A stretch of 64,000 nt of DNA, taken from NCBI RefSeq assembly GCF_000150275.1, contig NW_002060954.1:434001-498000 (forward strand), written 5' to 3'. Shown here one piece after another: positions 1,533 to 63,880 of this stretch. Under the pieces are notes generated by a model. The model was not told where the DNA came from. It was given only the letters and a program-made list of their open reading frames with translations, and ran no database searches. The position numbers and the translations under genes were made by a program. This DNA comes from Trichoplax adhaerens. Its lineage: Eukaryota; Animalia; Placozoa. The first letter of the stretch is position 1. Each line of letters opens with the position of its first letter.

Positions 1533-2090
1533 AAAACTTTCAATAATAAGTTTAAGTAGTAGTATACGCGTATACCTTTGTAGATAGAAAACGTCCAATT
1601 TACACCTCAAGTATAATACGCGTATATCGCATTCCTATTATTACAATATACGTATACATATACGCGTATCATAGAATATGTTAGATTAACATTTTCTTTC
1701 TTACTTTATTAATGTATACTCAGATGTGATAGCTTTTAGCTTTTACTAGCAACGAATAGAGAAGTGCTCAGTGGTTTTTGTATTCATAGTTTATGATTAT
1801 AGCAACGAAAGTTAGTATTCCGAACAAAGTTAAACTTTGTATCATCGTATTCCAGATGATATTGGTAGTTGATTATAATTATAGCTTACAGAAATTATCG
1901 GACTTATATTTACGATTAGTACCTGCAGTGAAGCCCCAAATAAGCTTGAGACTAAGATTATTGCGGAGAGGGTATGGTGAAAAGGATGTGACTGACAGAG
2001 AGACCAACTTTCGCTTGAGTAATCCATGTCATTGTACAGTACAGTACATACCGTACTTTACTCAGTGTACTGTACAGTAGAGTGTAAACG

Positions 2091-2194
2091 GGCTAATTTA
2101 CAGTATATGATTTTTATGAAAGCAAATATATAAAAAATTTTTTGTTTCTTTAATAAATTTTATATCTAACGAAAGAAAATGAGTTGAACTACAA
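2091..2194. repeat. Dispersed ~100-bp repeat, copy 1
   Basis: ggctaat...gatttttatgaaag...aaaattttttgtttctttaataaattttatatctaacgaaagaaaatgagttgaactacaa aligns by eye with 12745-12841. Confidence 0.8.
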
Positions 2195-2811
2195 TTTATT
2201 TATACGGAATGTCGGTGTACAGTAGCCACAGCACAGTACGTAACAGTATACTGTTAATGGAGTTGAGTGTGCATCGTTTGAAAATAACGACTGTGTGCAC
2301 TATTGTCTGGTTCGGGCACAGATGATTGGTTTTATTTGAACCACGCATACTCGTATACGAGAAATTCGAAGGCTGACTGTTTTGCTATTCATTTCTACAG
2401 CAGCTGCCACTTTTGCAATCTTCTAAGCAAAATAGTTAGATTACAGTATTCTGTATACTGTACAGTACTGCGCAGTTTGACTGCTATCATTGATACCATC
2501 TATGTATGAATCATGGTAATAACTCCTACTTGTATTATTTTTCGTTTACTGACGATGTACTAGTACAGTACAGTACAGTACAGTAAAGTTTTAGAGGTCT
2601 TCAATGACTCTTCATAGTCCGGTCTGCAGAATAGAATGTAAAGATGGACCTACTGTACTGTAGACCATGATCAGTGATCGGCATACAGGTGGGTGGAAAG
2701 TCATTTGAGATTTCTAAGTGTATTATTAGGATATTTTCCACACATTTTTGTTGTAATCATATAGAGTAAAGCTTATCATACTGTACAGTACTGTACAGCG
2801 ATAAGTTTGGT

Positions 2812-3242
2812 CATGGACTACTCTACAGTACTGTACTGTACAGTACTAGTAACTAGTACGGTACAGTACTAGGAAAAATACCTGGACTGGAAACTTTCCT
2901 CGGACAGATGGACTTTTCGTACTAGATAAGGCCGAAAATGTGGAAAAATAGTTACTCAGTACAGATCTTCCGTGTCTGTTTTCTAAATCACTCGTGTTAA
3001 TTTGAATTTGAACAACATTCATGATCTAAAGTTAATGTTTCTAAGCAGAGCTTAGTAACAGGTAATGGTACGCAATCTAATATTACTTAATTTAGAAAAA
3101 ATCAGTCAATTCAGAATCGACTGTTAGCATACTAAAGTAATGTCATAATGAAGTGTTTGACACAATTTATTGACCAAATAAGGCTAAGTGTCTGTCCGTC
3201 CAAACGAATTTCCGGTCCAGGTATTTTATCTACTAGTCCATG
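2812..3242. mobile_element. Non-autonomous TIR element (MITE), P/Galileo-like, 431 bp
   Basis: Ends are CATGGACTA...TAGTCCATG. The inner inverted match AAAATACCTGGAC(T/C)GGAAA is at 2875-2893 and 3209-3227. A perfect 7-bp direct repeat GTTTGGT flanks it at 2805-2811 and 3243-3249. Confidence 0.85.
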
Positions 3243-3296
3243 GTTTGGTACGACATAGTGGCAGTACAGTACAGTACAGTACACGAAATATGGGCT

Positions 3297-8206
<4,910 letters not shown>

Positions 8207-12381: not shown

Positions 12382-12744
12382 CGTTGTACGTATTAATTAA
12401 GAGGGTTCATAAAAGTTAAGAACGAAGTTGTCGCGCAGCATGTACGAAGAAGAATAAATAATTTGATATAATCAAAACTAATGCCTTAATGAAAGAATTA
12501 TGTACAGTACAGTACAAATAGTGTATGACCATGCACTGTATCTTTCCCGTAGTAAACGTATGGCACAAAGTCGGATTTAAGTGTAAGTAATTGAAGATAT
12601 TTGTACAAAATTTCGGAGTGGAAAAGAATAAAGTTGTAAAAAGCTAATCATGTTTATGACAGCAACTGCACAGTACAGTACAGTACGTTAACTACAATTT
12701 GTGCCCTAATCAGGGATTTTTTCTTAGACGTCCCAGAATGTCCT

Positions 12745-12841
12745 GGCTAATACGTAGGATTTTTGTGAAAGTGTACGCATGAAAATTTTTCTTTCTTTAA
12801 TAAATTTTATACTAAACGAAAGAAAATGAGTTGATTTACAA
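12745..12841. repeat. Dispersed ~100-bp repeat, copy 2
   Basis: ggctaat...gatttttgtgaaag...aaaatttttctttctttaataaattttatactaaacgaaagaaaatgagttgatttacaa, in the same orientation as 2091-2194. Confidence 0.8.
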
Positions 12842-12920
12842 GGATCTGTCGTCAAAATTTCTGTATAACGTTTAATTTTTTCATAATTTAAGTTTAAAGA
12901 TAAACCGTTATTTCGAAAAC

Positions 12921-13221
12921 TACAGTACGCAGTATAGTAAACAGTGATGGTACTGTACAGTACAGTACAGTACTGTATAAACTAGTGTACAGTACAGTAC
13001 TGTATGTTTATTTACACTATTATACTGTACTGTACAGATTATTTACTCTACAGGATAATAATAAAAATGATTTTAAATGAATCAAATTTGAGAAATTAAT
13101 TTTTTAAAATAGCGCTTACATTGCTGTCGAATTTTGATTGGCCTGTGATTTGTACGGAAGACAGTACAGACGCCAACCAAGTCGAATCGAACCTGTTGAA
13201 TTTACTGTACTGTACAGTACT
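12921..13221. repeat. TACTG/CAGTA tracts in the bmb-GNB1L divergent interval
   Basis: Repeated tactgtacagtacagtacagtactg at 12951-13037 and 13203-13221, with more at 13428-13480. Confidence 0.85.
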
Positions 13222-13257
13222 ATAGTTATATAATAAGTCTATAATAATAAGTGTATC

Positions 13258-13391
13258 CAGGGACTACTCAATCAAAATTGTACCCCGTTGCATAAAAATT
13301 GTCACCCATACTCTATAAAGATGAGAGCTCTTTCTAGAGTATGGGTGACAATTTTTATGCAACGGGTACAATTTTGATTGAGTAGTCCCTG
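13258..13391. mobile_element. Foldback (palindromic) MITE, 134 bp, same terminal motif family
   Basis: Arms 13258-13315 and 13335-13391 are reverse complements except for one indel (cccc/ggg). Termini are CAGGGACTACT...AGTAGTCCCTG. The 7-bp flanks GTGTATC / GTGTAAA match at 5 of 7. Confidence 0.85.
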
Positions 13392-13537
13392 GTGTAAAGC
13401 TACAGTGTCATGGTCTATGGACTAGTGTACTGTACTGTACTTATTACAGTACGGTACATACAGTGTATACTGTACGGTGTACAATACTGAATTCAGATTA
13501 CTGACACGGTGCACTACCAGGGGAGGTTTCGTAGAAC

Positions 13538-15636
13538 ATGGAAGGTGCTAAAGGTAGCGACAAGCCGCGACCTCCAGATCCAATTTATGTACTTCGCAGT
13601 ATTAAATCACCTGTAACAGATTTAAATATAGCTCTTTTAAGCAACATGCAGGTTATTTTTTGTGGGTACTGTATACGTATCCATGCTCGATAAGTTTAAG
13701 TTTTAAGTTTATAACAACAATCATGTTGAATCATTACAGCAGAAATAAGCTATAAGCAATCATCTATAGTATTGAACACTGTACTGTATACTGAGTAGCC
13801 CATAGCTATAAAATGGCATTTTTATTCATACTTACAGTCGTTTCGATGGTCAAATAGAACTATGGAACTTGGAAAGCAAGCGCGTTATGTCGTCTATCAA
13901 TGGGCATGGATGTTCTTCGGTTAATGCTATTGGATATCTATACGCTGAATATTTTTATAGGTACAGTACTACCGTACACTATAAACAACGTACATATCCA
14001 CAATATTTCCTACATCTGTAACATTTTTTAATATACTGAACACGTCAGTCATGGAAGGGATGGTAAAGTTAATGTTTGGAATTTATGCGGCGGCGGAATC
14101 GATAAGGTATCTTCATTTGCGTCCGAACTGACTAATTTCTGCAAGGCCTCTACTTTCTCTGATGGTATGTAAAATATTGTAAACGTTATTATACTATATC
14201 TGGCACTAGTTGCTTTTTAGCTATTACGTTATGATATAGCTTGTGATCTTACAAGTGGATTTATCTTAGATAATCTTAACATCATCAAGAGCTGTTGCAA
14301 TGAAATTAAGAATTGGATTGCACTGCCAGGTCCTGATTCTGAGGTAGTCTTGCTTTATTACACTACTCGTATTCTTGTATGTATATTGTGCTATCAATTA
14401 CAAGAGTGTATGAGCCTGCTTTAATTCATGTGAACCAGATTACTATCAAAAATATTTGGAATGGTGAAAATGTGCATAAATTAAATATATCAAATGATGG
14501 TGGGCTTGGTAAGTAAATTAACACCAGAATTGCTATACTCTAATAAATATTAATGTTTCATTTGCTTAAAGTATATAAACATTATATCGTCGCGTGCTGT
14601 ATATGCAGTATGATATAATCAGACAGAGGGTTAAGAACCGTACGATGGTAAGTTCAGCTAATAATTACTACTGATTCTACTATACTATAATATCAAGGCA
14701 TGTGCATGTACAGTAAATGCATAGTAAACGAGCATTATGGTAGACCGTATATCATGGCCGGATACGAATGTGGAGACATAATTCTCTGGGATGTCGCTGA
14801 GCGTAAACCATTATGTCAAAATAAGTGCTTTAATGAACCGGGTTAGTGACGCTACTGCTGCTACTTTTCAATATCGGTTCATTTAACTTCATGTTTAATT
14901 TGAATGAATTATCATTGCAAGAGAAAAAATTAACAGAGTAGTTTACTTCTTATTCAGTAACTTGTTTAGATTTAACTTCAACATATGCACACGGCTTGGT
15001 TGGATCGGTAGAAAGAGCAATTACAACCGTGGAAATAAATAACATGGTTCAGTGTTGTCTATTTATTAATGAAATTTCTTAATAGTATACACTACAAAAA
15101 ACTTACAACGCTAAAAATGATTTGCAAGCGTTAGTGACTAGGATACTTATTTCTATACTACCTCAATAATAATTATAATAGGAAACCTTAAATGTTAAGC
15201 GTTCCGCAATTACCATAAAAAATAGTGGTCTAAATGACATAAAAATTCGACCTGATAATAAACTGGTTGCAACTGCTGGCTGGGATGGAAGGTAATATTT
15301 ATCAACTGTATCTTGGTTATTTATAAGTAGTTGCGTTATCGTTTGCTTTAAATACTTCGATCGCATTCCGTTTTAAAAGTGTCCATAAACTAAGCATCTC
15401 TCAATTATAATTATTTAATGTACACTCATTAATTTTTTCGGTACATATATGTTTCATGGCGAGGTAGGATTCGTTTATTTAGTATGAAATCATTGAAAGC
15501 ACTTGCAGTTTTAACCTACCACACGGAAAGCATATCAAAGCTCGCTTTTTCCTACAATAACGCCATTGGATCGAAGCAGTTGCTAGTAGCTGGTTCAAGA
15601 GATGGCAGAATCAGTTTATGGTCAATTTATAATTGA
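13538..15636 (+). CDS. GNB1L: G protein beta-like WD40 protein GNB1L (Asa1 family), multi-exon
   Basis: N-terminus MEGAKGSDKPRPPDPIYVLR, then [63 protein letters not shown], and LLVAGSRDGRISLWSIYN*. The gene is missed by the ORF track because its exons are short. Confidence 0.9.
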
Positions 15637-17823: not shown

Positions 17824-18276
17824 TACTGTACAGTATACATGTATACAGTACTGTACTGTACTGTATGTCATATACTGTACTGTATATAACATACAGTACA
17901 GTATACTGTACAGTACAGTACTGTACGGTGCAGTGACATTGTTATCAACTTTCATTGCCTAAATTAATAGTACAGTACAGTACAGTACAGTACTAGTGTA
18001 GTTTTTCACTACTGCTTTGCAAAGCACCGGTGCTGAATGTACAGTACAGTGTACTGTACTGTACAGTACTTTACAGTACAATACAGTATACTGTACTGTA
18101 CTGTACAGTACTGTAGATACAGTAGATCTACAGTACGCACTCCTGTACAGTACTGTACTGTACAGTATTTCCGTTCCGTTCAGCGATACAGTGTACTGTA
18201 CTGTACAGTACAGTACAGTACTGTATAGTACTATACTCGGTAGCCAGACCTGGATACACTTGCGTACTGTAGTACA
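17824..18276. repeat. Largest TACTG/CAGTA tract, between divergent HSCB and AIFM3
   Basis: Near-continuous mixed-orientation pentamers that form TACTGTACAGTA and CAGTACTG palindromes. Confidence 0.9.
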
Positions 18277-18277
18277 G

Positions 18278-18330
18278 TATAATAATAATAATAGTAATAA
18301 TAATAATAATAATAATAATATAATTATAAT
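18278..18330. repeat. (AAT)n microsatellite
   Basis: tataataataataatagtaataataataataataataata... Confidence 0.9.
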
Positions 18331-19257
18331 AACGTTAATATTGAATCACATCTGAGTTAGGTTGTAAACTGAACTGTATTTGTTTCACAGCCGGATATTA
18401 TACTGTAAAGCTAGTAAAATATCACTTGTAAATATGTTACTGTATTATCCGTACCGGTGCGTACCAGGTTACCATGTCAACAATACTGTACATTAACGAT
18501 ATTGCATGAATTTGTTCGCAACTTCATCGCAGTTAGCGTAAATTACTGTACAGTGTAAGTATATGCTGTAGAAGTATCATTTGTATAGTATTACTTTACA
18601 TTTGATACTTTGATACTTACGAGTACATAGTACATAGTACATACTGTACTGTATACGTACAGTACAATAAAATAATTATGTTAATCATTAATTATAATTA
18701 AATATATATTTACAGTAGTTATTGTAACAACATGACACTATAACAACAATAATGAGCTCGCGCATTCTATCTGTATATACGGCATGCCCTAAGTAGTATA
18801 TTTTATGCGATAGGACCTTCTCTGGTAACACTCGAAAGAAAAAAAAGAGGGAAATATTATAAGTGAAGTGGTATCTAGTATCATAGAATAACCTTGTATC
18901 ATTAATTTTGAATGACTCAGTCATTCAAACTGGGATTTCATTGTAACCTGTGTTTTAATTCGTTTTACTATTGTAATGTCATCGTGCTCAAATATACTTA
19001 TTAGCTTTTTCATATTCTTAATACGTTTAATACAGTCATCATAAAGTCTACGATCAGATCTACGAAAGGAACAAGTTTCATTAAGCTGTGCGATCACAAC
19101 TGGCTGATTTCCACTCTCCATTCTAGAAATGTACGTAGTTACCTGCACTACCAAGTGTCTTACACTTATAATTCACAGCCATGCCGTATTGCACTCCGAT
19201 TAAAACTTAAGGGCTTAATAAATTGCTAGAAATAGAAACAGCGACCAGATTAGAGAG

Positions 19258-28724: not shown

Positions 28725-31316
28725 GGTAAACCCTGTAAGAATGAAGGTAAAGCAAAAATCATTTAATGTATAAAATACTGTAAATGAAATAATACTGTGT
28801 GAGAAACAGCAAGTTTTACTATATAAGACTGCTTAGGTGGATAAACCAATATACCGTGGTGTGCACCAAGATGGATAACAGTACGATGTACTCATAAATT
28901 AAGAATGGGAAGTCACTATTACTTTAATGATGATGCAAATTATATTATTATTTACTTTATTAATATCTATGACCTAAACATTTAAAATTTAGGATACAGG
29001 TTTCACTGTTTATTGCATCGCAATTGATATGCACGGTATTGTAAAAAAAATACGTAATTATAATTATAAGGTAAAATTAGATGATTATACTGAAATTAAA
29101 TCTATCTTAAAATCATTAAATATGCCTATATTACATAATTACAGTATAAAGATTTTATACAGTTAATAAATCAATGAATATTTTTTCTTAAATAATTATA
29201 CGCGTATAATTTAAGTTAATCGCATCAGATAACGAAATTATTTAAACTATTAGTAAATCATTTATTCATAGACGTAGAATCTATAAGCAAATTTTACGAA
29301 GCGACAACATTGATGTGCAGTTCAATAAAGTGGCATAAGTCGATGAATGATATACAGTAATAGTATAGTACTACGCTTATTTGAAATAGAAATATTCTGA
29401 TCCTTTACTTAGATATTGATCGCAATAAATTGGGTTTTCAACCCTAAATCTTATTAAAAGCACAACCATCATTGAGTAATTATTCACAACCAATTAATTA
29501 AAGAGTACAGTACAGTATAGTACTATACTGTACAATGTAACGTACGACTATTTAGCTCGTACTTCATACTATCTATAGTACTGCATTGCTGTACGAAAAT
29601 TTATTTGAGAAACAACAGTCTACGATATGAAATAAGTGTAGATGGTAAAATAAGAAAATAAAACTAATCAGTGGTTGCTTAGAATAGTAAGAAATTGAGC
29701 ATCGTTAGCAACGAAATCCTAGACGTACAGTACTTTACCACTTTTCAAAATTTTATTATTGAAAATGTACACAAAATAATGATCGCTAAACGAAATTAAT
29801 ACGAATACTGTACTAGTAATACTTTCGTAACACAGTCAAGGAGGTTTTAGCCTAAATTTTTAAAAACCAAGTTAGGTTTTTATAGATTTTGTTAATATAT
29901 AATACTAAAGAACAACAAGTCGTTTTCGACGTTAGTACAGTACTTAGTATAGGCGATAGACTAGGGTTTAGTACGAACTGCACATAAATAACGTAGTAAT
30001 ATTTTAGTGATAAAATGGTAATGCTAGCTTAGATAGGCGTTTTTTGTCGCTCAACATCACTTTTTCGTACGACAAATGTTGCAGTAACCTTTTACAGAAA
30101 ACAGATTAAAATTAATTTAACCTACATTTATTTTGGAAAATGTTTCCGATTAGATAAAATTTATGAAACGTAATAAATGCTTAAAACATTTAACCTAACC
30201 TATTCCTTCCCTAAATACAGTATTTCTATCAGAACCTTGCTGCCATAACTGATTATAAATTATAATGTTACTACTACCAAAGAAGTAGAAGAGCATTTCA
30301 TTTCCATCAGTATTAATCCTTGGTAATCCTTGATGACAAAATTTTTAGATAGTAGAATGTACTGTATTGTTCGTATTTTACTTCGGCTATTCGGAGGGTC
30401 CGCAACATTTGTGATATTCATAATTGATCTTGACATATATACGTGTAAACGTCTAATTTACGATAGGTATTTCTACAGTTGTCGTTAGTCTTGCTACATA
30501 TGCCAATTCATTCCGTGTTTAGATTGATTAACGTTAACCCGTTTTACTGTCAGGACAATTTAGTAATAATACTGGATATACGGTACGGAACATATCACAA
30601 ATAACAAGGACAAGATTCAGGTTATAACTGTAAATAAATATTATTATTATATTACCGATATACGCCTTACTTCAAGCGTTAAAACTTCTTTAAAATGCAG
30701 CAGATGTCTTGCTGGATAAAATACGTCAATGAGTGGAGATATACATATACTATTTTCGCTTACTACTTCATATTTAAAAGCATAAGTGAAAAATATTAAA
30801 TGACATGATTCAATAATAAATAAATATGCGATGATGAAGAAAGAAAAAATGTACACTACAGTACTATACTATACTATTTTTATTTATATCAGTGACTTCT
30901 GCTACGGACAGTACGGATCATGAAGGTACGGTATTTATTTATTTTATTTTATTTTATTTTATATGCCTGAGCGCATACAGTACAGTACAGTACAGTACCG
31001 CGTATATTGAACCACGATTTCATGGGCGTGGCAAGCCCTATACTGTACAATGTAAATGTACAGTACACCATATAGTACCACACTGTGCGTACTAGTTGGA
31101 AACTGTCCTGTTCAGCCATAGTGTAGCCGTCAATTAGGTCTTTCAATTTTTTAAACTTACATTGAATTTGGCTAAAATTTCTCGAATAATTACAACCATG
31201 AGCAACTGGCACTTTTTATAAAATTTTTACTGCATTATTGAATTTAATTTATTTCTTTGACATTTCGAATACAAACCATCATCAGTCACTGATGCGTGTA
31301 CGGTCGGTTCAAATAG

Positions 31317-31636
31317 TATACTGTACAATGTACAAGTGATGATGAAATAGTGGTCTACTGTACAGTTAGACTACAGTACTACAGTACGGTACAAGATTGA
31401 GTGCCGAGAATCGGTTCATACTGTTACAGTACTGTACACTGAGTGTACAGTACAGTATAGTGTTCAGTCTGTCCGTTATCATACAGTAAACGTCGTACAG
31501 TACAGTACAGTAGAAAGGAGCAGCGGTTTACTGTACAGTACAGTACAAAGCCAAAAATATACTGTACAGCCTTATACAGTACTGTATACTGTACTGTACT
31601 GTACAGTACGTCAAGTAACATATAGTACACTACAGT
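31317..31636. repeat. TACTG/CAGTA tract in the RNF34-THOC5 divergent interval
   Basis: Dense pentamer repeats, with further blocks at 30850-31070 and 31853-32175. Confidence 0.85.
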
Positions 31637-31954
31637 ATTAATCTAGTAACACCTAGAATCTTGGATAATTCCTAGCCAAAGAAAATACGTTTATGTCTGA
31701 TTATAAATTATCATGTAAATCCAGTCGATCATCATTAGTAATTAATTGGCTTTGGGTATATAAGCAATTTTTTCATACTGGAAATTGCAATAACTTTAGG
31801 ATATTAATATATTCGTTGTAGGACTGCTTAAAACGCGGTAGTTTTGTTTTCCGTACAGTGTACACTGTACCGTACTGTACAAGTTCCTGCTCATCGACAG
31901 CACATGAAAGTACAGCTTAAAATTTTAAACTAAAATACTAGTATAGTACTGTAC

Positions 31955-32021
31955 CATGGACTACTAGAAGAAGGCAGGTTTTCTTCTAGCGTACAGTACA
32001 GTAGATTACTAGTAATCCATG
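31955..32021. mobile_element. Short TIR remnant or excision footprint of the same family
   Basis: CATGGACTACTAGAAGAA ggcagg TTTTCTTCTAG [cagta insert] CTAGTAATCCATG. The 7-bp flanks ACTGTAC / ACTGCAT match at 5 of 7. Confidence 0.7.
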
Positions 32022-32318
32022 ACTGCATGCGTACAGTACATTTGTTTTCCAGTACTGGTTTGACTTCTAGATTTTATGTACTGTATGTACTGTACAGTAC
32101 AGTACGGTACTGTACACTATACTGTAGTTGCTTTGATGTATTGTACTGTACAGTATAATAACGTACACTGTACACAGCAAGCATTTCTTCAACAAAAATT
32201 CTCGACAGTTAACCAAGATTACAAATTAAGAAACAGCCGCATTGACTTACAGTAATAATCCTTCAGCATTTTCATCTACAAAAGCGTGAATAATAAATAA
32301 ATTATTCAGCTTTGCAGA

Positions 32319-54108: not shown

Positions 54109-54235
54109 ACAGTACCGTAAGTCTTGTACTGTACAGTGTACAGTACTGTACAGTATTACAGTACTACAGTCTTAAAGACTCTATTCATAGTACAGTACTG
54201 TACAGTACTGTACAGTATACCGTACTGTACTGTAC
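54109..54235. repeat. TACTG/CAGTA tract between the divergent SAM-RA gene and IFT22
   Basis: gtactgtacagtgtacagtactgtacagta... repeated. Confidence 0.85.
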
Positions 54236-54253: not shown

Positions 54254-54272
54254 CATGGACTACTAAAAGAAA
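54254..54272 (+). mobile_element. Solo terminal repeat of the CATGGACTA family
   Basis: CATGGACTACTAAAAGAAA is identical over 19 nt to the reverse complement of 63637-63655. No convincing partner end or TSD was found. Confidence 0.55.
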
Positions 54273-54854
54273 ACCTTATTACACATGCACACGCCTCTGT
54301 TACCAAGGTAACTTATGATCAATAGACTTATCAATCTGAATCTACAAGCTATTTGGTTCCAGTACACAGAAAAGACTATTATAATTACTTCTTACTAATG
54401 GATTATTAGCTAGCGTTCTAGCTTCAGATAATGCTTAAATACTGGTGAACACATTGTTAGTTATCAGTACTATGGCAACCGCAATCTGCCTTTCCATTAA
54501 CCCTTAAGTTACTATAACTGTATGAGGACATAGTGAAATGCGATACGAACTGTATGGCATAGGTAGACCGTAGATGTTATTATGTCAAGTTTCTCGTATT
54601 AGGATGAGAGAGTACAATTACTGTAACAGCTGCAATAATGTAATGTAGACTATGAAGCTACTGTGTTAGCGTTTGCACTTTAAGCAGCCCACAAACCATC
54701 GACAATTATAATCGTTCATATAGAAAGGTACAACTATTGCAAGTAACGACACATCACGCAAAATCATAGATATACAATTCAAAAAATTCTAGTAATACTT
54801 TATAATCTGTCACCTTCTCGACTAAACATTGCCACAATTCAACATTACTTGATT

Positions 54855-56322
54855 ATGTTCAAAACCAAAATATTGATGGTTGGACCGTGCGATGTAAGTA
54901 CTAGTACTGTACTTGTACTGATTGTAAAAACAGTAACGAGTAATGAATTTAGATCATACTATGCCATCGTTTCCTTTACGTAAATATCGTATACGTTATA
55001 AAGAAATATTTAAATGACTTGGTTATGGGTTTTAGTTTATAATTCCTTCCCTTTCTTCCCTATAAACTCAACATATGAATTGTTATGTATTTTAGAATCA
55101 CGTTAGGCTCATAATATTACGAGATATACAATCCCATTGATAATTGTTTTTAATCAGGGACTACAGATATACGAGTAATTTAATATAATATATTCAAACG
55201 GTTTGCGACATATAGAGTGGGAAATCGGTCATAGCTAATTCCTTAGCCGAAGCAACAGATCTAACTGGGGGAAACTATCGACCAACGAAAGGCGTAAGGT
55301 CAGTTTGGAAACTACAGTATATTCAACGTCTTGAATGATCGCAAATCATGTAATCTGAGCAATACCTTAATATACGTCATGAAGTACTGACTTATAAAAA
55401 GTTTCTAGATATAATGCGTTTATCACGGTTAGTTATCTATAAGTTTAAAGTAATTTATATATATAGTATACTAAAATGATGAGAATAATCATAAAACATA
55501 AGTAAATGTTCGTGCAGGATATTGGAGTTTGAATGTAATGGCTTAAGAAATAGCTCAAATCGTACCCTTAAAGCTGATGTAGAGTTATGGGATTGTAGCG
55601 GAAATAGCGAGTGAGTCACTATTATTAGTGGTAATAATTCTACGAATATTATGATATTAGCGTGGACAGTTTATTCTGAAAGGTATACATCAACTATTTT
55701 ACTGGTAGTTATGAAAGTTGTTGGCCGGCTATGTGGAAAGATACTCATGGAGTGATTATTGTGTATAATCCCGATAATCTGGATCATAATGGAGAAATCA
55801 GTAAATGGTAACTATATAGGAAATGATAGTAACATCAGACATAGTGTTCCTACTATTTTTTAGTAGACCAATATCATAATTTATATTAGTTCGATACAAA
55901 TGAATCTTTATCCATCTTTGTATTTATCGCTAAGCATGTACAGGCACATAATTGCCATTAAGCGACTGCAGTTTTTATCATCTTGGGTTACTTTTTATCA
56001 GGTATACTCATTTCATTTCTCAGCAAGGCCTTCGCGACAGTCAGTGTATGCTATTCGCTCATCTTAAACCTGATGGGTCTAAACAAGTCGTAGATTTGAG
56101 TAAGTTATGGATTGTTTAATTTAGAAAACTCTTGTATCTGATTTATTACATAATTATTTAACATATATAGCTGGATCTCTGTCAAGATTGAAATGTGTGC
56201 ACACATCGATGGAAGATCGACCGGAGGTAATAAGACAAGAATTTAGGACCTTTTTGACTCATGTCTGGGAGGCATGGGCTGCCAAAAGGGATCAAGAAGA
56301 ACTTAGTATAGTGAATAATTAA
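54855..56322 (+). CDS. IFT22: Intraflagellar transport protein 22 (Rab-like 5)
   Basis: MFKTKILMVGPCD|SGKSVIANSLAE..YRPTKGVR|ILEFE..VELWDCSG..YESCWPAM..HGVIIVYNPD, ending KRDQEELSIVNN*. Absent from the ORF track because its exons are short. Confidence 0.92.
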
Positions 56323-63140: not shown

Positions 63141-63617
63141 TCTATGAAATGAGAAGGAGTGGGTACGTTCGCTTAGAGTCAAGATCAGGATTTATATCAC
63201 GTAATCGTGAAGAAGAGCTTTTATGTCTTTACTAATTTCCTGTAGGTTAACGTAGTGAAACGTATACATAACTAAATCTTCTTTAGCTGTAGCTAACAGC
63301 CTCAAATTGTTTTAAATTTAGTATATACTCGTATGGCAATAGTTCTATCGGTACTGTAATGCTGCGCTTCGTTTTGGAAAGATTAAAATCAATTAATCAG
63401 GGTTATGGCCGCACCTCCAACAGATGTGTTTATTGAATAATGTAGAATAAGAGGAGTCACTAGGCTAGTGTTCTGTACGTGTTCGTACGTTTAGTTCAGA
63501 GTACTGAACTTCTTGCAAGACTCACTCACTTTAGTTTAATTTCGAGGATGAGGTTTTATACATATACAAGAGTTAAGCTAACTATAGAAGTCTTTCAGGT
63601 TCTCCACTGTACACTGT

Positions 63618-63655
63618 CGACGACTACTACAGTAGATTTCTTTTAGTAGTCCATG
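63618..63655. mobile_element. 38-bp TIR remnant or excision footprint with perfect 7-bp TSD
   Basis: ACACTGT (63611-63617) | cgacGACTACTAcagtagatttctttTAGTAGTCCATG | ACACTGT (63656-63662). The left end is degenerate. Confidence 0.7.
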
Positions 63656-63727
63656 ACACTGTAAACGATGCAGCACAGCATAAATAGTACAGAAATTTGT
63701 AGTTTGATAAGGGTTGTCGAATCATCT

Positions 63728-63880
63728 CACTGTACTGTACAGTCATGGACTAGTACTGTACGATGGTGTACTGTAGGTACTGTAGTGTACAATGTACACT
63801 GTACAGTACAGTATACGGTATGCAGTACGGTAGTAGTGTTTTTTCGTTTAGTTGTCCTACTACTGTACTGTACACTAGTG
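63728..63880. repeat. TACTG/CAGTA tract upstream of TAOK, containing another CATGGACTAGTA end at 63744
   Basis: Repeated actgtac/cagtac units, with CATGGACTAGTA at 63744-63755. Confidence 0.75.

Follow-up and report, generated by a model that had tools for sequence, protein, structure and literature searches.

A family of short elements with 7-bp target duplications in promoter regions of Trichoplax adhaerens, very probably old and immobile MITEs

We have studied a window of 64,000 nt from Trichoplax adhaerens (the whole stretch of DNA analysed, positions 434,001 to 498,000 of contig NW_002060954.1), together with related sequences in the rest of the genome. The elements found in it very probably belong to a family of non-autonomous DNA transposons of the cut-and-paste type (MITEs), old and no longer mobile, located in tract-rich promoter regions of this species. 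They have the features which define MITEs: terminal inverted repeats, a flanking duplication, no coding capacity and many dispersed copies. An earlier note on this DNA had proposed a transposon family with foldback and very short copies; the dispersed homologues and the ends which they share show that the family is real. There are three size classes of elements: copies of ~400 bp with inverted repeats of ~55 bp, foldbacks of ~134 bp, and many copies of 28–70 bp with little beyond the two ends. All of them share a terminus of 11–14 nt, CAKGGACTACTNR, and target duplications of 7 bp at sites of the palindromic form RYNNNRY. The association with promoters is already published, under the name of 'Mutator' (Kim et al. 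2025, PMC12221973). The new features reported here are the length of the duplication and the form of the target, the terminus common to the three size classes, and the decay of the ends as compared with a nearly invariant GGACGGAC block.

The element placed upstream of the thioredoxin-reductase gene is a 431-bp member of the ~400-bp class (family A). It lies on the + strand in positions 2812–3242 and has been recognised from its genomic homologues and from an alignment of 21 copies. It is flanked by two identical heptamers GTTTGGT, in positions 2805–2811 and 3243–3249, which can be read directly. Its left end (2812–2822, + strand) is the 11-mer CATGGACTACT, a motif found in excess in the genome; its right end (3232–3242, − strand) has one mismatch and reads CATGGACTAGT. 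Between the left 11-mer and TAGGAAAAATACC there is a tract of TACWG pentamers of ~47 nt (2823–2869), which breaks up the left inverted repeat, as it is apparent on comparison with copies in which this repeat is uninterrupted (loci L005, L011 and L014). Two subterminal blocks are found further inside. The left one (2902–2913, + strand) is a GGAC repeat which is degenerate in this copy, GGACAGATGGAC; the family consensus is TGGACGGACTTT, with a conservation of 0.92. The right one (3190–3201, − strand) is GTCTGTCCGTCC, reverse complement GGACGGACAGAC; no other part of the family is so well conserved (column conservation 0.98). The element ends 54 nt before the ATG in position 3297, where the sequence MAASRRLA... 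starts, followed by a thioredoxin-reductase exon, as judged from motifs read in the translated exons. This is the same distance to the start of TXNRD2 that had been claimed before. According to the earlier note the copy may supply promoter sequence to this gene. With its conserved block intact and its position next to TXNRD2, it is a good test locus.

The other members found in the window are shorter. A near-perfect foldback of 134 bp (family B) with CAGGGACTACTC ends occupies positions 13258–13391, between two divergent genes, with a first exon on each side of it. The heptamers which flank it, GTGTATC and GTGTAAA, coincide in five of seven positions. In positions 31955–32021 there is a short member of 67 bp, related to tiny copies elsewhere, with a left arm CATGGACTACTAGAAGAAGG which matches a variant of the family-A repeat. 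It has one mismatch in its right end and its flanks, ACTGTAC and ACTGCAT, also coincide in five of seven positions. A solo left end, CATGGACTACTAAAAGAAAACC, is found on the + strand in positions 54254–54275, without a convincing partner. A tiny member of 38 bp (63618–63655) has a degenerate left end and is enclosed by two perfect heptamers ACACTGT, so that element and duplications extend over positions 63611–63662. Finally, a solo end with one mismatch, again CATGGACTAGT, is found in positions 63744–63754 (+ strand) and continues directly into a pentamer tract.

The other four of the five real sites precede the first coding exons by ~150, 300, 640 and 480 nt. Translation shows a first exon M...KRRK at ~32319 and another one, MFKTKILMVGPC, at ~54890; the member in 63618–63655 is close to a kinase exon (GHGSFGAVY), which starts at ~63140 on the minus strand. 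The identities of the neighbouring genes rest on motifs read in their first coding exons, and a Pfam search of these single exons gave no domain match. All the positions listed in the earlier note hold when the sequence is read again, and so do the distances upstream of start codons, which go from 54 to ~640 nt for the five real sites. A further exact match to CAGGGACTA, absent from that list, is found in positions 55155–55163, inside a gene body and downstream of an IFT22-like start. In the window sequence it has no partner and no further resemblance to the repeat ends; since ~0.6 such matches are expected per window, it is probably due to chance.

The terminal motif is much more abundant than expected by chance. 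In the window CAKGGACTA has nine matches, with 0.58 expected, and none of 100 shuffled sequences reaches nine. In the complete assembly (105.63 Mb, 1414 contigs) we found 912 matches of CATGGACTACT versus 48 for the reversed control, a large excess for the motif which the earlier note had suggested should be searched. Independent insertions are slightly fewer than these raw counts, given the presence of pairs of nearly identical loci on small contigs (L025/L026 and L029/L036). In each pair the element and its flanks are nearly identical, as would be the case for haplotypes which were not collapsed or for segments duplicated recently.

The size classes have different features. Starting from 282 first-look candidates, at least 40 scored relatives of the 431-bp copy have an identity of 72–83% with it. 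The alignment of 21 copies shows that the inverted repeats of this ~400-bp class measure ~55 nt and consist of the terminal CATGGACTACTAG, then AAAAATACCTGGAC and then the GGATGGACGGAC block. For the 134-bp foldback we found at least 12 further copies in the genome, 72–78% identical, each of them matching both strands. Tiny members were searched for as two perfect 11-nt ends at most 30 nt apart; at least 45 elements of 28–48 nt were found, with a median of 39, while the control gave none. The arms of the tiny elements match differing variants of the repeats of the longer elements. Tiny copies are either what is left after excision or derivatives with extreme internal deletions. The genome search for the motif and the fetched loci gave no autonomous copy. 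An inverted pair of ~1.9 kb in L021 was considered as an autonomous copy and rejected: it is formed by two separate short elements which flank a run of N. The motif search also gave a second long inverted pair of ends, ~1.5 kb apart, which is a candidate for an autonomous copy.

The length of the target duplication was determined on 49 pairs of ends, matched loosely and taken from the window and from 40 fetched loci, by comparing their flanks at lengths from 3 to 12 nt. As claimed before, 7 bp is the only length which gives a signal: the mean flank identity is 0.43, versus 0.21–0.29 elsewhere, with 0.35 at length 12 because of the 5-nt period of the tracts. Four duplications are perfect at length 7 and another three differ in a single position. 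In these 49 pairs perfect duplications were seen at no other length, and one of 8 bp fits a single pair. When a looser pairing rule is used, other perfect cases of 7 bp are added, such as GTTATAC (L034) and ACACTGT in the window. The 12 convincing duplications have the form RYNNNRY, with R in position 1 in 11 of 12, Y in position 2 in all of them, R in position 6 in ten and Y in position 7 in 11; this pattern comes from 12 sites only, many of them within tracts. A (TACWG)n tract also satisfies RYNNNRY, in two of its five registers.

Pentamer tracts of ACAGT/ACTGT are very abundant in this genome. We have found 57 of them in the window, and their seven larger clusters occupy 8% of it. Five of these clusters contain a member of the family (2036–3674, 12504–13787, 30977–32154, 54128–54233 and 63729–63871); the other two, in positions 11–132 and 17825–18652, have none. 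All five real sites in the window are inside or beside clusters of (ACAGT/ACTGT)n tracts (P ~4e-6). The same is found in the genome for the ~400-bp class: 17 of 20 sampled copies are at 100 bp or less from a promoter-type tract, versus 11% of random positions (P=5e-14), in a sample which is small (about 220 kb and 20 copies). The 100 nt strictly beyond the right end contain a tract in 7 of 21 copies, versus a background of 5% (P=5e-5). A weaker association, which is nevertheless significant, was found for 26 end sites of small contigs: their median distance to a tract is 401 nt versus 1455 nt (MWU p=5e-4), and only 35% of them are within 100 bp, so that the link with tracts is looser in tiny copies and solo ends.

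ACAGT tracts are the dominant microsatellite of Trichoplax adhaerens, and 54% of their loci are found within 1 kb upstream of a gene (PMC2871265). Since copies of the ~400-bp class are linked to such tracts, their promoter bias is real. The location in promoter regions proposed in the earlier note thus holds for the five sites in the window and for the sampled ~400-bp copies. Its statement that the elements are found only at gene 5' ends is correct for all five real sites in the window, but may not extend to the tiny copies in the whole genome. The promoter location may come from a transposase directed to promoters or from a survival of insertions there. The elements would have landed in promoter regions rich in (ACAGT/ACTGT)n tracts, which are themselves full of RYNNNRY sites; the density of this target in the tracts offers a concrete reason for the promoter bias. 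The (ACAGT)n microsatellite described by Wang et al. (2010, PMC2871265) is a separate and far more numerous feature, in or beside which the elements of the family are found; the 2010 paper made no link between MITEs and tracts. A similar concentration of insertions in one kind of microsatellite is found in MuTAnT, a MULE family of Medicago which targets TA microsatellites (PMC4486113). It belongs to a different superfamily and has another target and another duplication length, so that it is a precedent for microsatellite homing only.

The relation between tracts and elements might also be the opposite one: if the elements create the pentamer tracts, the association would say nothing about the landing site. 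It is true that in most 400-bp copies a tract is found inside the outer left inverted repeat. However its position varies between copies: in L010 it is further inward than in the window copy, and in L005, L009, L011, L012 and L014 there is no tract. The variable positions indicate a further growth of tracts within elements already inserted. As most of the tract signal of the 400-bp class is inside the left inverted repeat, where it is secondary, part of the association may have arisen after insertion. Against a general creation of tracts by elements we have their enrichment strictly outside the element, already mentioned, and the number of tract loci, in the thousands (PMC2871265), which far exceeds the hundreds of elements. 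Furthermore, several duplications are themselves tract sequence (ACAGTAT in L035, AGTACAG in L030, GTACAGT in L001 and ACACTGT at window position 63618), so that the tract was there before the element. An origin of the tracts from the elements is thus improbable. From the duplications made of tract sequence and from the difference in numbers we infer that tracts are mainly landing zones, with a secondary growth of tracts inside the elements. Tracts which have grown inside the outer inverted repeat are seen in the window copy (2823–2869) and in the left repeats of L001, L002, L004, L010 and L015–L020. The core of the elements also shows a few copy-specific gains of 5 nt at TA, such as TACGG (L018) and TACAG(G) (L004); they are a minority of the core indels.

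The copies are old. The divergence of the core from the consensus is ~18%, and the best non-self match of the window copy is 83% identical. In the family alignment the outer repeats are the least conserved part, with 0.4–0.8 per column, and the subterminal blocks the most conserved one (TCTGTCCGTCCA 0.98 and TGGACGGACTTT 0.92 per column). The GTCTGTCCGTCC sequence has 179 matches in the genome versus 3 in the control, including the window site in positions 3190–3201. Outer repeats are needed for transposition. Decaying ends, together with an inner motif which is kept, are the pattern to be expected if the family is dead and the host retains its inner motif. After insertion the outer ends would have decayed, while the subterminal GGACGGAC block (98% conserved) would have stayed almost invariant, in agreement with a use by the host. 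The recent activity which the earlier note had attributed to the system does not agree with these features: the copies have diverged by ~20% and their ends are decaying, which indicates an ancient system, now dead.

It might also be thought that the motif does not derive from a transposon at all and is a palindromic site for a transcription factor or an architectural protein, conserved at promoters. The terminal 11-mer is indeed often perfectly kept in very short palindromes, and loop anchors have been reported to carry a motif from within the repeat (PMC12221973). Nevertheless such a site would not explain why separate loci have perfect flanking duplications of 7 bp which are unrelated in sequence, nor the ~400 bp of dispersed homology with 72–83% identity, nor a terminal motif which is less conserved than the interior. 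We consider this explanation extremely unlikely.

A transposon origin leaves the question of the superfamily, which the earlier note had identified as P/Galileo. The structure supports it better than any other superfamily: the ends are CA..TG, the duplication measures 7 bp and the target has, in the 12 sites used, the palindromic form RYNNNRY. Duplications in the P superfamily have 7–8 bp; here the signal is at 7, with one pair at 8. P elements favour promoters. Galileo, 1360 and BuT5, of the P superfamily of Drosophila, share with the Trichoplax family the duplications of 7 bp with an odd case of 8 bp and the CA...TG termini. Galileo, 1360 and P-superfamily MITEs likewise have foldback and internally deleted copies, and ends which are reused in different non-autonomous copies. 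Galileo has duplications of 7 bp, rarely 8, and a target GTANTAC (PMC4168063), with the same palindromic shape as the RYNNNRY found in our 12 sites, many of them in tracts. On the other hand, the Drosophila ends have no sequence similarity with those of Trichoplax beyond CATG, and the Trichoplax family is an ancient one, now dead. No element of the P superfamily is listed in the census published for the transposons of Trichoplax (PMC2871265). In our own search of the genome with the Pfam profiles PF21787, PF12017 and PF21789 there was no candidate for a P transposase of the THAP/RNase-H type, an enzyme characterised also by a GTP-binding insertion; this is a weak negative, as the search was done exon by exon with no working positive control. 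Profile searches of the genome for P, MULE and hAT transposases gave none linked to the ends of the family. Thus the structural part of the P/Galileo proposal (CA..TG ends, 7-bp duplication, foldbacks) stands, while neither a P-type transposase nor an autonomous partner has been found in the genome, and an assignment to the P superfamily, which comes from structure, is tentative. 

P-type cleavage is staggered by 17 nt and leaves remnants of the inverted repeats at excision sites. The tiny copies of 28–48 bp, in which 14 nt or more of each end are preserved, are compatible with P-type excision remnants; abortive gap repair explains them equally well, and some arms have at least 22 nt, a length above 17. 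The possibility that they are pure P-type footprints of 17+17 nt was rejected as unproven: their lengths vary from 28 to 48 nt, some arms are longer than 17 nt, and one sequence of 33 nt is found at two loci.

A competing assignment is to the MITEs of Mutator-like elements (MULEs), which also favour gene 5' ends; the enzyme would then be a MULE transposase (DDE, often SWIM). This is how the elements of Kim et al. (2025) are labelled by EDTA (PMC12221973). MULEs are known to insert near genes (PMC6446971), the inverted repeat of ~55 bp is within their range, and the genome contains MULE transposase remnants in four PF10551 loci. None of these four loci has the termini of the family in the flanks which we fetched (up to 1.5 kb, partly N). 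MULE duplications measure 8–11 bp (PMC6446971), versus 7 here, with no signal at 8–11. Taking into account that the EDTA call derives from structure and not from a transposase, a MULE origin appears unlikely. A hAT-type MITE has even less probability, and we consider it very unlikely. Elements of the hAT type have duplications of 8 bp and YARNG termini. The CAGGG ends of the foldback subfamily fit YARNG, and the genome has intact hAT-derived genes, with five matches of the hAT dimerisation domain (PF05699), some of them in long open frames. However the dominant and commoner terminus CATGG violates YARNG, only one of the 49 pairs fits the duplication of 8 bp which is the hallmark of hAT, the inverted repeats are longer than it is usual in hAT, and all five hAT loci are without family termini in the fetched flanks.

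The nature of the superfamily is relevant for the interpretation of published data on placozoan genomes. Kim et al. (2025) reported in Nature that housekeeping (GP1) promoters of placozoans frequently contain 'Mutator' DNA transposons, with an inverted repeat which carries a motif enriched in loop anchors; the family is common to four placozoan species, and either domestication of the motif or targeted integration in promoters was proposed (PMC12221973). Their repeat annotation was made with EDTA only (PMC12221973). According to a later preprint, the insulation motif of Trichoplax is the ACGG repeat of that transposon, alongside ACAGT (10.1101/2024.11.14.623548). The repeat (ACGG)n is the same as (GGAC)n, the most conserved block of our family. 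Judging from the descriptions, and in particular from the wording on the ACGG repeat as compared with the GGACGGAC block, our family is probably the 'Mutator' family of Kim et al.; they coincide in organism, promoter position, conserved repeat motif and old age (PMC12221973). The GGACGGAC block would then most likely be the transposon-borne loop-anchor motif of the placozoan promoter hubs which is ascribed to 'Mutator' (Kim et al. 2025). That paper gives no description of the 11-nt terminus common to the members, of the classes of foldbacks and tiny copies, or of the link with ACAGT tracts (PMC12221973). The duplication of 7 bp which we have measured is unlike those of MULEs and contradicts its EDTA label (PMC12221973). 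In earlier work Wang et al. (2010) had described MITEs in Trichoplax as 'quite rare', with one family of about 20 copies, and cited five non-autonomous Repbase entries (PMC2871265).

It should be noted that the placozoan promoter hubs are currently ascribed to 'Mutator' by means of an automatic structural label. EDTA assigns the class of an element from its structure. The superfamily decides which mechanism placed a loop-anchor motif at hundreds of housekeeping promoters; it also points to the domesticated DNA-binding architectural factor which should be looked for, either of the THAP type or of the MULE/FAR1 type. The measured duplication of 7 bp and the RYNNNRY target argue for a P-like origin. 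The complete proposal is that these are true P-superfamily MITEs, that a lost transposase homed to the RYNNNRY palindromes of the tracts, and that the GGACGGAC block was later co-opted as an anchor of promoter hubs; as a whole it is possible but doubtful. If true, a P-type system would be recognised in Placozoa for the first time, and the three-dimensional architecture of promoters would have been seeded by a promoter-homing P-like transposon and not by Mutator.

Some loci have particular features. An identical tiny element of 33 nt is found at two loci, G000:C1412:2349151-2349183 and G000:C1414:5493695-5493727, with a 2-nt variant at C1411:4872932; it suggests that elements of this size either were mobile themselves or were generated several times from a single parent. 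In L001:239-919 (G000:C1406:1963671-1964351) there is a copy of 255 bp with CAGAGACTACTCGA ends and another one of 400 bp, only 7 nt apart. The spacer between them, GTACAGT, is also duplicated in the 7 nt beyond the far side of the 255-bp copy; the pair looks like a repeated insertion at one hotspot inside a tract. In other cases parts of the elements have been amplified as tandem arrays, with a copy of the terminal 11-mer or of the GTCTGTCCGTCC block every ~105–395 bp. These arrays, which are minisatellites born from the ends of MITEs, are found in G000:C1012:1439-3045, C1381:56309-57305, C1009:2008-3118, C1402:915466-916435 and C1404:1132015-1132732, and also in L019 and L010.
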